Origin: Thecamonas trahens ATCC 50062 | Taxonomy: Eukaryota; Protista; Apusomonadida | NCBI RefSeq assembly: GCF_000142905.1 | Contig: NW_013657669.1 | Location: 186,001 to 250,000, forward strand | Length of the DNA stretch: 64,000 bases | Direction: 5' to 3' | Shown here: piece after piece, positions 21,179-43,376 of the stretch | Layout of the letters: every line of letters begins with the position of its first letter | Numbering within the stretch: position 1 is the stretch's first letter | Translations under genes and position numbers: made by a program | Notes under the pieces: generated by a model | The model's database searches: none | Told to the model about the DNA's origin: nothing | Seen by the model: the letters and a program-made list of their open reading frames with translations, nothing else

Positions 21179-23720
21179 ATGGCCAAGAAGTCGTCCAAGG
21201 GCTCGAGGGGCTCCAAGGGCTCCAGGGACTCCAAAGGCTCCAAGGGCTCCAAGGGCAAGGGTAGCTCGTCCAAGGGCGGAAAGGGCTCCGGCGGCCGCCG
21301 CAGCTCCAAGAAGAACTCGTCCGGCAAGGGTACGTCGGACTTCGTTCCTTCAGCGTGGGCTGCCTGCGGCACTAGCCCCTCCCCCCCCTCCCTCATTGCC
21401 ACAGTCCCTACCCACGGTAGCACACCTTTTGTCACCCCCCACCTACCCACACTATCTCTACTACACCGTCACCACGCCCCTATTCCTTTTCTCTTTTCTC
21501 CCATCCCTTTCCCTGCTTGCTTCAGCCTCTCGCCCGCCCCATCCCCCCCCCCCCCCCCCCCCGCCCTCTCCCCGCCCCCGCCGGTGGCGTTGTTCGTCGC
21601 AGAGCGTTTTTTTGCCCGCAATGGGCCAAAACGCCTTTCCCACCGTTCCGCCCCCCTCCTGGTGGTTCAACCACCAGCCAGCCAGCTAGCCAGCCAGCCA
21701 GCTAGCCAATCAGCTACGCCAACTCCACCGCCCTCCCCCCCCCCTCCCCTCAACTCACCATCTTCCGTTGCATGCAGTGTACGGTGGTCCCAAGTACACG
21801 CCACGGCACACGGATTGCTTCTTCCTCCTCCTGTTCATTTGCTTCCTCGTGGGAATGGTGGTGGTGTCGATTGTTGCTGTGCGCAAGGGTGACATCAACC
21901 GGCTCATTCGCGGGCGTGACATGTACGGCAACCTGTGCGGCGTGAAGAACAACGGCGACGGGCGCAACACGCTCGACCACACCTCGCGTGGGGTGCTCAT
22001 CTTCCCCAACCCGGTGCGGCTGTCGGTCTCGTACTGCGCGGAGCGGTGCCCGTGCACCAAGGACTCGCCGTGCCCGAACGTCGACTTTTCGAACCCGGAC
22101 TACTCGCGGCTGCTCTGCCCGTACCAGCGTGACGGGTCGCCGGTGTATGCCGGCGGACCGTCGAACCCGAGTCACATTGTGACGTTCAACACGGACGGCA
22201 AGTGCTACTGGTGGTTCAACACGCGTGAGATCATCAACCGGTGCATCCCGACCGGCTCGGAGTTCTTTGTCTCGCCCAACTCGAACTCGACGACGTCTGC
22301 CGACTCGTCGAACATTGACAACCTGCGCGACCAGACGACCAAGATTCTCGGTGACGTGAACCAGACCAAGTACTGGCTGTTCCTGCTTGCGGGCGTGGCG
22401 CTTGTGCTCGGCTTTGTGTGGCTCATCATGCTCACCCACTTTGCCGGCTTCTTTGTGTGGACGACGATTGTGCTCATCTTCCTCGCCTCGCTCGGCGTCA
22501 CCATTTTCCTCGGCCTCGAGTACAAGGAGGACCGCGACGAGCAGCAGAAGCTCGAGGCGCAGGGCCGCGGGCAGGACGTGACCAACTCGGAGAAGGCGCA
22601 GAAGACGACGCTGATGGTGCTTGCGGTCATTGCCGGCATCATCACCATGGTCATCCTCGTCCTCATCTGCTTCTTCTTTAACCGCATCAAGGTCGCTGTC
22701 CGCCTCATCAAGGAGGCTGCCAAGGCTGTGGGCGAGATGAAGCTTATCATCCTCTTCCCGCTCGTCACGCTCTTCTTCCTCATTGCCGTCCTCATCTACG
22801 GCATCGCCTTCTGGCTCATCCTCGGCACCGTCGCCGACGACGTCAACGACTCGGACGGCAACTGGAAGGGCACCAAGTCGGACCGCACACTCCAGGGCAT
22901 GCAGGTCTACTTTGTCTTTGGCATTTTCTGGCTCGTCGCCTTTGTCCTCGCCGCCACCGAGATGACCTTTGCCCGCACCTTTGTCCGCTGGTACTATGCG
23001 CCCAAGGGCAAGAAGGCCGGCTCGGGTGGCAAGGCCCAGGGCGTCGGTTCGTGCACCGTCTGGCGCTCGTGGGGCACCGTCATGTGGTACCACCTGGGCA
23101 CTGTCGCCTTTGGCTCGTTCATCATTGCTGTCGTCATGATGATCCGCGCCGTCATCTGGTTCATCCAGCGCAACCTCGAAAAGTACAAGGGCAACGACTT
23201 TGTCGACAAGCTGCTCAAGTGCCTCGGCTGCTGCTTTGCCTACGTCCAGCGCTTCCTCGAGTTCATCAACCGCAACGCGTACATTGTGACCGCCATGATC
23301 GGCATCGGCTTCTGCGGCGCCTGCAAGCGCGCCTACCACCTCCTCACCTCGAATGCCGTCCTCCTCATCGCCGTCTCGGGCGTCGCCGAGTTCCTTCTCT
23401 TCCTCGGCAAGCTCTTCATCACCGTCTCGGTCGTCATCGTCGCCGTTCTCATTTTCCGCTCTGACGACGAGCTCAACTACTGGGCCATCCCGGTCATCCT
23501 CGCCGCCCTCATCGCTTACGCCGTCGCCACTGCCTTCCTCTCGCTCTTCTCCATCGCCATCTCGACCATCTTCCTCTGCTTCTGCAACGACATCGAGTAC
23601 GCCACCATCAACGGCAAGGGCGAGGACGAGGTCTGGCCCCATGTCTCGCCTTCGCTCGACAAGTTCATCTCCGAGTTCAAGGGAGCCTCGCCCGAGGCTA
23701 AGATGGTCGACGCCAAGTAA
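21179..23720 (+). CDS. Choline transporter-like protein (CTL/SLC44); 2 exons
   Basis: Exon 1 is 21179-21329 (SKG repeats); intron 21330-21777. Motifs RHTDCFF, DMYGNLCG, YHLGTVAFGSFII, FINRNAYI and TIFLCFCND; about 10 TM. Confidence 0.92.
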
Positions 23721-39867: not shown

Positions 39868-40004
39868 AGCCAGCCCATGATGCGATAAAAATTTCAAGAA
39901 TTTTGTGGTTGGCGCCCCACCCAGCGGTTCAGCCCTGCACTCGGCCTCGGCCACGGGCCACATCTCTCTCTCTCTCCCTCCTTCAGAAACACACCAGGAA
40001 CAAC

Positions 40005-40747
40005 ATGGAGTTTGGAGACGGCATCGCATCGTCGCGCGCGCGTCTGCAGCGGCTCAAGGTCCGCGGTCTGGGTCTGGTCGGCGGGCCAGCCCGAGTCCCT
40101 CTCGGTGATGCCACCAACGGCTCAGGCGAGCTGGCGGCGTCGGGTGCGTATCAGAAGTCTGCAGCAGTCATTGCCAAGGCGCGTGCGGTGCTTCAGGAGC
40201 GGAACGCTTCGATGGCGGCGGCAGCAACTGTGGCTGTGGTGGGCGAGATCGAGAATCAGAAGGAGGCTGAGGTCGAGGCTGAGGCTGAGGTCGCAGCCGA
40301 GTTGGAGGCTGAGGTCGAGGTCGAGGCAAAGATTGAGGTCGAGGCTGAGGTTGAGACTGAGGTCGAGGCCGAGTTTGCTATGGCTGATGCCATGGCGGAA
40401 GTGTTTGAGGAGATTGTGACGGCCGAGAAGGAGACGCCCAAGTTTGAGATGGGCGCCCAGATGGCCAAAGTGCTTGACGAGGTGGTTGCCAACAAGGAGG
40501 ATGAGGAGCAGGAGCAGGAGGTCAAGGTCGAGCCGGTGGCGCCGCCGCGGCGAATGACGCGGGTGGAGAAGGCGCGGTTGGAGGCGCTGGCAGCGTTTGG
40601 AGGCTCATCATCGCTCGACGATGTGTTTGCCAAGGCTGAGGCACCTGCCAAGGTTGTGGAGGAGGAGCAGCAGGCTGCACCGAAGCGAATGACACGGGTG
40701 GAGAAGGCACGGCTTGAGGCGTTGGCCGCGTTTGGAGGATCGTCGCT
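40005..40747 (+). CDS. Hypothetical protein with D-box-like motifs and 45-aa tandem repeats; truncated by the gap
   Basis: ATG 40005; RVPLGDATN; an EAEV-rich tract; RMTRVEKARLEALAAFGGSS repeated at 135-nt spacing. Confidence 0.6.
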
Positions 40748-41118
40748 NNNNNNNNNNNNNNNNNNNNNNNNNNNNNNNNNNNNNNNNNNNNNNNNNNNNN
40801 NNNNNNNNNNNNNNNNNNNNNNNNNNNNNNNNNNNNNNNNNNNNNNNTCCCCTCCTCCCCCCCCCACCCCCCCCCCCCCCCCCCCCCTCCCCCTCCCCCT
40901 CCTCTCGCCGCGCTGCTGGCTGGCTGCGCGTGACCCGCCACAGGTGCGGCACGTTCGGGCAATGGTCGCTTTTTCCTCGGACCTTTTTTTGCGACCTTTG
41001 GGCGATTGTGGCCTTTGCTTGCCCATGCTCGGCACTTGGTGGGGATGGGGATAGGCATGAGCCATGGATCGATGTGTATACTTACAGAGAATGGCCCTTT
41101 CGGTATGGATGTATTCAG

Positions 41119-41788
41119 GACCGGGATGCCAGCAGGAATGGCAGACTGGCGTCAAGGCGCTCCTCCACACCGCGGACGTGCTCGCTATCGCTAACTTTAC
41201 CTACGTATGTTGCTCTCCCCCCCCTCCTTTCCTCTCTCTCTCTCTCTTGCTTTCTCTCCAACTCACAGCTCCCTGCCCTAGTATCCGTACGGTAACGCGC
41301 GCGGCTACGAGCCCAACGTCGAGTGCCAGCACGGGCCGAACGAGTGCCTGGGCAACAAGATCGAGGCTTGCCTCATGCACCTCAACCCCAAGCCGACAAC
41401 CTGGGTCCAGGCGCTGGTTTGCATGGAGTCCGGTACACCGTACGCCAACTGGAAGAAGTGCGCGTCGGAGAACTCGCCGGCCATCGAGACGGCGCCTATC
41501 GAGTCGTGCATCGAGGGCTCGCTCGGCAACCAGCTGATCAACGACGCGGCCCGCGCCACCAACTCGCTCAACCCGCCGCATCAGTACACCCCGTGGATTA
41601 CCATCAACGGCAAGCCCAAGCAGGGCTCGCTCATCCGCGAGATCTGCGACGCGTACACGGGCACCAAGCCGTCCGGCTGCTCGTCGCCGTCGTCGTCGTC
41701 CGGATCCTCGGGCTCGTCGTCAGGCTCGTCGTCTTCGGCCGCTGCCGCTGACTACAACCTTCCGCGCGACCTTTGCTTCCGCGATTAG
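41119..41788 (+). CDS. IFI30: GILT-family thiol reductase; first exon in the gap; candidate selenoprotein (U-P-G-C)
   Basis: Exon 41119-41204 (xPGCQQEWQTG...NFTY); intron 41205-41281; exon 41282-41788 with YPYGNA, the signature CQHGPNECLGN, and YTPWITING. Confidence 0.85.
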
Positions 41789-41851
41789 TTTTCAACAGTT
41801 TTTCTGCCTCCTCCCGCAGCCCTCATCGGTCTCCGACCTCTGCCCGTAGCC

Positions 41852-41941
41852 GCAGCGTCCGGGCGTGGCCGCCCTGACGGCCGCTGTCCACCGTCCTCGC
41901 ATGCCGAGGACGAGCAGCGAGCCTGAGCATGCGGGACGTGC
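41852..41941 (+). promoter_or_regulatory. Candidate non-canonical type II SECIS element in the GILT 3' UTR
   Basis: Helix I CGTCC/GGACG and GCGTG/CATGC; core CTGAC(41874)...TGAG(41924); helix II GGC-CGCTGT/GCAGCG-A-GCC; apical 8-bp minihelix CGTCCTCG/CGAGGACG. Confidence 0.55.
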
Positions 41942-42320
41942 GCGAGTCTTTGGACTCGATGCATGTCTCGCTCTCCCGCCACGCCCCCCCGCCGCGGCGC
42001 GAAGCCGGCGCGCGCATCTGTACTGCGCTCCCACTCCCTCGTCCCGCACCTCGCTGACCGGCAGCTCCCTCTTGCTCTGTTCCGTACGCCTCCGATCTCC
42101 CGCCCCTGCCATTCCTGCCCCCGTCTCGCCGCGGGGAAGTGGGCGGTCCGAGAACGAGGCGTTGCGGCAGAAACACTGCTGCCGCCCACAGCACCCTGCG
42201 CCCGCCGTCTCGCGCGTGGATGCCAACGCCGAAGAGTTCTGCTCCATAGCACAAAGGAACACACACCTGCAGCCCCCCCCCCCCACCCCCTGCAGTTTTC
42301 ACGTGACTAAGCTTGGGCGT

Positions 42321-43376
42321 TTATGCGTCGCGCTTGCGGCCAGTGTTGACGGTGGCGGCGGCGCGGTCGGCAGCGTCCCAGTGGTGGTCGAACGGATCGG
42401 CGCCGCCAACCGGGGCGTCGGCCTCGGTGGCAGCGGCGGCGGTCGCCGGGTCGACGGTGGGGAAGGGCGGGGAGGTGGGGAAGGTCTTGCGGATGGCGTC
42501 CGAGACAACGAGCCAGCCCTTGGTCGGGCCAGGGAGCGAGCCGCGGATGAGAACCACGTTCTCCTCGGGCACAACTTTGAGCACCTTGAGCGACTGCGAG
42601 GTCCGGTTCTTGCCGCCCATGCGCCCGGGCATCTTCTTGTTCTTCCACACCTTGCCCGGCCCCTGCGAGCCACCGGTCGAGCCACCATGCCGATGGGCAA
42701 CCGAGGTACCGTGCGAGGCCGACTGGCCCTTGAAGTTGTAGCGCTTCATGACGCCGGCAAAGCCCTTGCCGCGAGTCACGCCGCGGACATCGACGTACTG
42801 GCCGGGCAGCAAATGCGCGGCAGAGAGCTCGGTGCCGACCGGGAGGACCGCGTCGTCCGAGACGGCAAACTCGACCATCTTGCGGCGCGGCTCGAGGCCA
42901 GCCTTTGCATACACGGTCCGCTGCGGCTTGTTGACATGCTTGTCCTTGGCCTTGGCCGCCGCCACCACCAGCCGCGACGTCGGCTTGGGCATGGCCTTGG
43001 GGTTGATCTTTGCCTTGACCGGCTCGTCCTTCACCGAGACCACCACATTGTCGGGAAAGTGCACCACGGTCGCCGGATGCCGCTTGCCCCACTCGTCCCA
43101 GTACGGCAGCATGCCGAGCTTGACGCCGACCAAGCCGACTCTCCGCGAGCTAGCCGACCACTCTGCTGCTGGAATCCCAGCGCCATCCCCTCCCGCCTTG
43201 TCTTGCTCAACTTGGCCACCAGTCTCGCTCGCATGCGCTGCCTTTCCGCTGCTGGCAAACCGCTGGCTCGTCACCACTGTCGCCGTCCCTGCCACAGCCG
43301 TGGATGGCAACCGGCTCACCGCCCGTCCCGCCGCCGCGGCAACCGCGCTCGCTCCCGCAACCGCAGCACGGAGCAT
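42321..43376 (-). CDS. MRPL3: Mitochondrial ribosomal protein uL3m
   Basis: Presequence MLRAAVAG...; GVKLGM; GQYVDVRGVTRGKGFAGVMKRYNF; HRHGGSTG; KKMPGRMGG. Confidence 0.95.
   Translation of the reverse strand: MLRAAVAGASAVAAAAGRAVSRLPSTAVAGTATVVTSQRFASSGKAAHASETGGQVEQDKAGGDGAGIPAAEWSASSRRVGLVGVKLGMLPYWDEWGKRHPATVVHFPDNVVVSVKDEPVKAKINPKAMPKPTSRLVVAAAKAKDKHVNKPQRTVYAKAGLEPRRKMVEFAVSDDAVLPVGTELSAAHLLPGQYVDVRGVTRGKGFAGVMKRYNFKGQSASHGTSVAHRHGGSTGGSQGPGKVWKNKKMPGRMGGKNRTSQSLKVLKVVPEENVVLIRGSLPGPTKGWLVVSDAIRKTFPTSPPFPTVDPATAAAATEADAPVGGADPFDHHWDAADRAAATVNTGRKRDA

Follow-up and report, generated by a model that had tools for sequence, protein, structure and literature searches.

A probable selenoprotein gene of the GILT family in a protist, with its selenocysteine codon divided by an intron and its first exon lost in an assembly gap

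Background

Downstream of an assembly gap in the genome of this marine protist lies the greater part of a gene for a GILT-family thiol reductase, in which an exon begins with GA CCG GGA TGC and the first residue of the expected C-x-x-C redox motif is carried by a codon that ends in GA. The question is whether this residue is selenocysteine (Sec), encoded by a TGA codon whose first base lies in an exon hidden in the gap, as a preliminary description made from the sequence alone had proposed. GILT, a lysosomal disulfide reductase, was introduced as "a new eukaryotic selenoprotein family" by Zhang and Gladyshev in 2008 on the basis of three ocean metagenome reads, one of them with a SECIS, whose host organisms were then not known (PMC2398784). 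In the list of algal Sec families given by Jiang et al. in 2020, GILT is one of those with the narrowest distribution (PMC7539508); the supplement of that paper does not name the algae that carry it. Sec-GILTs of some algae are mentioned in the preliminary description as well.

Results and discussion

Layout of the locus

The window is the whole stretch of 64,000 nt that was analysed, and all coordinates are positions in it, on the + strand unless stated. The features of the gene are listed here; L013 is a spliced environmental transcript described below.

40748..40847 (+): assembly gap of 100 N, a placeholder size, which the upstream ORF enters; neither the window nor the assembly contains the sequence of exon 1
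40848..41118 (+): 3' part of intron 1, with zero RNA depth in four runs; it starts with a C-rich tract (40848-40905), and a branch-like CTTAC (41081-85) precedes the acceptor CAG (41116-18); the two contigs that extend to 41119 continue from there in exon 1
41119..41204 (+): exon 2, of which the first two letters (GA, 41119-20) complete the split T|GA codon for the probable Sec
41121-29 (+): codons for P-G-C, from which the redox motif U-P-G-C would result
41205..41281 (+): intron 2, 77 nt, GT..AG; the 41204/41282 joint is present in contigs of three runs and in L013
41282..41790 (+): coding part of exon 3, with the GILT domain and its signature, a Ser/Gly-rich tail and the TAG stop (41788-90)
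41791..42050 (+): 3'UTR as covered by transcript L013; further RNA contigs map up to 42269
41851..41944 (+): SECIS-like type-2 hairpin, contained in transcript L013 (L013:756-849)

The letters on which the preliminary description relied (CTTAC, the acceptor TTCAG ending at 41118, GA CCG GGA TGC from 41119 onward and the N-gap) are those of the window, and the distance of 532 nt that it gave for the sequence downstream of GILT was measured as 530 nt between the GILT stop (41788-90) and the stop of the convergent gene (42321-23). Because the unspliced frame reads GGA at 41118-20, the identity of the codon depends on the choice of acceptor and on the preceding base.

Membership in the GILT family

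The gene belongs to the GILT family (Pfam PF03227) by two profile matches of 57.6 and 67.4 bits (1.8e-15 and 1.6e-18) against a cut-off of 22.4, the 1.8e-15 match being that of the exon from 41282, and it is single-copy, the sole GILT match in the genome. Exon 3, of which the translation includes YPYGNA, contains the family signature CQHGx2ECx2Nx4C as CQHGPNECLGNKIEAC, and the Pfam alignment of the piece that starts with P-G-C runs from profile position 11. The redox motif that follows the first beta strand is predicted to be U-P-G-C, strictly a selenol-thiol pair, not a dithiol.

The mature mRNA and the split codon

This stretch occurs in public sequencing runs, most of which are metatranscriptomes of marine, seawater and subsurface samples. 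Contigs of four runs were mapped on 40848-42300, and RNA support here means such assembled contigs. One metatranscriptome contig (X3 record 10) matches 41119-41204 and 41282-41322 with 0 mismatches; the 83 letters that precede 41119 in it are foreign to the stretch and end in ...CGAATCCCTCT / ...GGCTACTACGGCGAATCCCTCT. A homology search with exon 3 returned a Logan ORF call (P0001, 100% identical to exon 3), and its contig, L013 (955 nt, from a different run than the first contig), is a spliced, nearly full-length transcript with an ATG at L013:7, a TGA at L013:100-102 that is followed by PGCQQEW..., a TAG at 691-693 and a 3'UTR of 262 nt. Over the 855 nt from 101 to 955, L013 corresponds to window 41119-41204 joined to 41282-42050 and differs from it at two positions, 41174 and 42029. 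The window exons were joined only for this comparison, and in database searches the parts of L013 on each side of the TGA were used separately. At 41174 the first contig agrees with the window and L013 differs; the two are therefore separate molecules, and they probably come from different strains.

In these two independent RNA contigs the upstream exon ends in ...GGCGAATCCCTC-T, so that the mRNA reads ..VGYYGESL-TGA-PGC. The codon formed by splicing is T|GA rather than CGA, AGA or GGA, and its first base, the final T of exon 1 in L013, belongs to a sequence that is missing from the assembly; on both points the preliminary description had predicted correctly. The mRNA is assembled from at least three exons, with a phase-1 intron splitting the TGA codon, and the predicted protein has 228 residues, with U32-P-G-C35 in the place where other GILTs have C-x-x-C. 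Exon 1 encodes the start codon, a hydrophobic signal-peptide-like segment and the strand ..VQVGYYGESL. The N-terminus of the L013 product is MNATFVVVVLALAALASAAPLVQVGYYGESL, and the N-terminal sequence MNATFVVVVLALAALASA is signal-peptide-like as judged by eye only.

Exon 1 (L013:1-100) was found neither in the window nor in the whole 28.7 Mb assembly, and therefore it sits in the N-gap, the content of which is the 5'UTR, the ATG, the signal-like peptide, ..VGYYGESL, the T of the Sec codon, the exon 1 donor and the start of intron 1. Since the upstream ORF runs into the gap too, its true size must exceed the placeholder of 100 N. The gene has evidently been hidden from annotation by a combination of three features: the TGA, the intron that passes through the codon, and the assembly gap.

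A different product would arise if the acceptor ACAG at 41086 were used, as the preliminary description had allowed, or if translation started at the ATG at 41064 on unspliced RNA: a single-Cys GILT (..RMALSVWMYSGPGC) with Gly (GGA) in the first position of the motif. The frame is indeed open from 41064 through 41204, and its peptide vaguely resembles a strand followed by xPGC, but no RNA contig in the four runs covers 40848-41118, both contigs that contain exon 2 join it to exon 1 at 41119, the alternative N-terminus has no signal peptide, and the Sec architecture is found in all orthologues. The single-Cys product, with an acceptor at 41086 that no RNA contig supports, is thus extremely improbable. 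The ATG-started frame at 41064-41204 (MDRCVYLQRMALSVWMYSGPGC..), which runs from intron 1 unbroken into exon 2, is likewise without RNA support and probably exists by chance.

Conservation of the TGA

The preliminary description had placed Sec at the first Cys of C-x-x-C, and comparison with homologues agrees. In a local alignment in which the TGA was written as X, it shares its column with the first Cys in the CPGC, CPAC or CPDC motif of nine Cys-type GILTs, and TGA occupies the same column in six of six divergent transcripts, five of them from other organisms, with both flanks conserved. Each of the five foreign contigs has an in-frame Met, a hydrophobic N-terminus and a strand of the V.V..Y.E.L type, followed by TGA-PGC or TGA-PAC; the nearest of them (L014/L015, 56% identical) reads ..VAFYGESL-TGA-PGC.

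Many of the GILT matches in the databases are short ORFs of 150-190 aa that begin just past the C-x-x-C position (P0002, P0005, P0009, P0011, P0020, P0022, P0023, P0028, P0061-P0063 and others; loci L014, L022-L027). All six of the truncated ORF calls that were traced to their contigs (five of five among the foreign ones) are Sec-GILTs that the gene caller had ended at the UGA, and about ten further short entries look alike. Sec-GILT looks common in marine protist metatranscriptomes.

Selenocysteine machinery and other selenoprotein genes

The search for the Sec machinery covered tRNA-Sec, SepSecS and SelD, and the genome encodes all three: tRNA-Sec (74 bits, where the cut-off is 47; called tRNA-SeC by ARAGORN, with anticodon TCA, that is UCA), SepSecS (285 bits, an intact ORF of 500 aa, approximately 50% identical to animal SepSecS) and SelD (193 bits). 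Of these, tRNA-Sec and SecS are among the genes that the preliminary description had named as ones to look for in the genome. Four GPx genes (L006, L007, L010, L012), one MsrA gene (L020) and two Rdx-family genes (L016, L017) contain one in-frame TGA each, located at the active-site motif in three GPx (NVAS.U-G) and in MsrA (GMGU), and inside the Rdx matches in the Rdx-family genes. A SECIS-like element lies downstream of every one of these seven genes. Besides GILT, the genome has at least these seven genes with a single in-frame TGA.

The possibility that UGA32 is a true stop, leaving a peptide of 31 residues and a GILT domain that is untranslated or part of a decaying pseudogene, draws on the fact that TGA is normally a stop in this genome: TGA terminates the SepSecS ORF and does not occur inside long conserved ORFs, so that it is an ordinary stop and has not been reassigned. 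Nevertheless, in the GILT gene the frame downstream of the TGA, the GILT signature and the conserved cysteines are intact, TGA is kept at the same column in six of six divergent transcripts that are conserved on both sides of it, the genome offers no other GILT match, and GILT transcripts are present in several environmental RNA data sets. Termination at UGA32 is accordingly considered very improbable.

The protist's single GILT-family gene is therefore very likely a selenoprotein gene. The evidence for Sec, all of it at the level of sequence, is the in-frame UGA in the mature mRNA, the conservation of that UGA, and the presence of the Sec machinery. Three circumstances that the preliminary description had named as contrary to its proposal (a spliced codon other than TGA, use of the upstream acceptor, or a genome lacking Sec machinery) do not apply, because the codon is T|GA, the 41086 acceptor is without RNA and the machinery is present.

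The SECIS-like hairpin

A candidate for the element that would direct Sec insertion begins approximately 60 nt past the TAG stop, with its UGA core 85 nt past the stop. The hairpin consists of helix I (41851-60/41934-44), the 5' core UGAC (41875-78) preceded by C, helix II (41879-87/41914-23, 9 bp), a 5' bulge CCAC (41888-91), a mini-stem (41892-99/41905-12, 8 bp) with the loop CAUGC, and the 3' core GA (41925-26, in the context U-GA-G). It has C instead of A before the UGA, and CCAC instead of AA in the bulge. The six other SECIS of the genome are all of type 2, with UGAC as the 5' core and C/U-GA as the 3' core, and in them a helix II of about 10-12 nt is followed by an AA-containing 5' bulge and then a mini-stem; four have AUGA, and the two that have CUGA belong to GPx genes (L010:2535-2592, L012:2658-2713). 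Canonical AUGA..AA elements are found in three of the foreign Sec-GILT transcripts (L014:892-937, L023:815-869, L024:797-872). The published consensus for the SECIS core is UGAN/KGAW, with loop adenines that are occasionally cytosines (PMC3753652), and by this consensus the predicted hairpin is unusual but inside known variation.

A descriptor made from the six SECIS, with thresholds set after the candidate hairpin was known, matched only once when both strands of the 64 kb window (127 kb) were scanned, at the GILT hairpin, and in a loose scan of 41788-42330 no other TGA..GA hairpin passed. A covariance model (R2) trained on four of these six SECIS finds the MsrA SECIS, which had been held out (31 bits), and a new SECIS downstream of the Rdx gene L016 (25 bits). 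Run with its filters off on the 530-nt UTR, it places its best match at 41865-41936 in the correct register with 10.4 bits (E 0.022), a score that is not significant over 128 kb. With default filters, neither R2 nor the earlier model R1 reported the GILT hairpin in the whole window; R2 at these settings also missed the CUGA element of L012 and the canonical SECIS of the foreign GILT transcripts. The model R1, made from two sequences, was too sequence-specific and missed three SECIS taken as true in addition to the GILT hairpin. SECIS slices aligned with MAFFT did not agree with the structure, and these alignments were left out of the models, and a first, gapless helix scanner was set aside after it missed the SECIS of L014.

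The fold favoured by plain MFE folding competes with the SECIS (z -1.7), and the SECIS-type fold lies 2.4 kcal/mol above the MFE under an energy model that gives no credit to the core G.A pairs. An Rfam search of 40848-42400 (E<=10) found no SECIS; this blank is uninformative for the GILT UTR, because the Rfam SECIS_1 model matches nothing in the whole genome despite its clear selenoproteins. The preliminary description had noted a SECIS-like hairpin downstream of the gene, and that much holds: an element exists at 41851-41944, it is transcribed, and it is the sole descriptor match. The case for its being a SECIS is moderate, not strong.

Sec could be inserted at UGA32 under the direction of another or unrecognised SECIS in the long 3'UTR, which RNA contigs follow as far as 42269. 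The hairpin at 41851-41944 has no AA motif and does not have the A that usually precedes UGA, it drew a blank in Rfam and just 10.4 bits from the lineage covariance model, and the GC-rich DNA of this region yields many stable hairpins. On the other hand, even the loose scan passed no second TGA..GA hairpin in 41788-42330, the hairpin is the only descriptor match in the window, its UGAC core is common to all six training SECIS, with CUGA in two of the six (L010, L012), and replacement of AA by cytosines is known in a few SECIS (PMC3753652). A second element elsewhere in the UTR is thus unlikely, and the hairpin at 41851-41944, given that Sec is inserted, is probably the working SECIS.

It is possible, with a weight set slightly below even, that the GILT mRNA is decoded via a SECIS that has neither A before the UGA nor an unpaired AA, as one of a relaxed set in this lineage. 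If so, SBP2 would be expected to have an altered recognition of RNA, and standard SECIS finders would undercount the selenoproteome. The GILT hairpin together with the CUGA elements of the two GPx genes suggests that the lineage needs its own SECIS model.

Comparison with known systems and proposed function

Sec-GILT has already been published; particular to this gene are the intron-split Sec codon, the loss of the first exon in the gap, and the CUGA/CCAC form of the candidate SECIS. Compared by its published description, the marine Sec-GILT of 2008 is similar to this gene in its GILT domain, the UGA in place of the first redox Cys, the eukaryotic-type candidate SECIS in the 3'UTR and its marine origin. 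Unlike the 2008 sequences, which were anonymous metagenome reads, this gene is part of an assembled nuclear genome, and it also differs from published Sec-GILT in its intron-split Sec codon and in a candidate SECIS with CUGA/CCAC rather than AUGA/AA. It provides an organism-anchored, expressed example of a family first known only from anonymous ocean reads.

The protist protein resembles human and other vertebrate GILT (IFI30) in its domain, in the position of xPGC/CxxC after the first strand, in the CQHGx2ECx2Nx4C signature and in its signal-like N-terminus, and is approximately 45% identical to shark GILT over the domain. Unlike the vertebrate proteins, it is predicted to have Sec at the attacking position and it has a Ser/Gly-rich C-terminal tail, and it is without the N-terminal saposin-A-type propeptide (PF02199) of many animal GILTs. 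Marine protists also have selenoproteins with a thioredoxin fold and a UxxC or CxxU motif (Sec-PDI, DsbA-like, SelW/T/H), in which Sec replaces one Cys of the redox pair by means of a SECIS in the 3'UTR; the logic is the same as in Sec-GILT, but the protein families are different.

According to the proposed mechanism, UGA32 would be recoded to Sec by tRNA-Sec as directed by the type-2 SECIS-like hairpin in the 3'UTR, and the N-terminal signal-like segment would lead to secretion of the protein into an endolysosomal or digestive compartment. There, the selenolate of U32 may attack the disulfides of substrates and C35 may resolve the selenenylsulfide intermediate, and the nucleophile would stay ionised in the acid compartment owing to the low pKa of Sec. 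That a reductase working at acid pH should attack with Sec would be expected biology and is not surprising.

Other features of the window

The ORF upstream of the gap (39903-40747, +), of which the 3' end is lost in the gap, encodes Glu/Ala/Val-rich repeats with two copies of ..PKRMTRVEKARLEALAAFGGSS... The convergent neighbour of the GILT gene (42321-43376, - strand) encodes ribosomal protein uL3 of the mitochondrial type (PF00297; uL3m), of which the best named relatives, from Cafeteria and Chrysophaeum, are only approximately 48% identical; the best named relatives of uL3m and SepSecS together range from 48 to 51%. The collection searched thus contains no sequenced genome close to this one, and the uL3m matches give at most a faint hint of stramenopiles.

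Long C-rich homopolymer-like tracts directly adjoin N gaps in the window (40848-40905) and in L007 (reverse strand, approximately 2300-2316 and 2750-2790), and a similar C-rich tract is found in the 3'UTR of L010 (approximately 2665-2690). It seems that poly-C/poly-G tracts are where the assembly breaks into gaps.

The best match of the R2 model in the whole window is located at 22120-22179 (+), with 17.5 bits (E 0.073) and a GUGAC..CGAG core.
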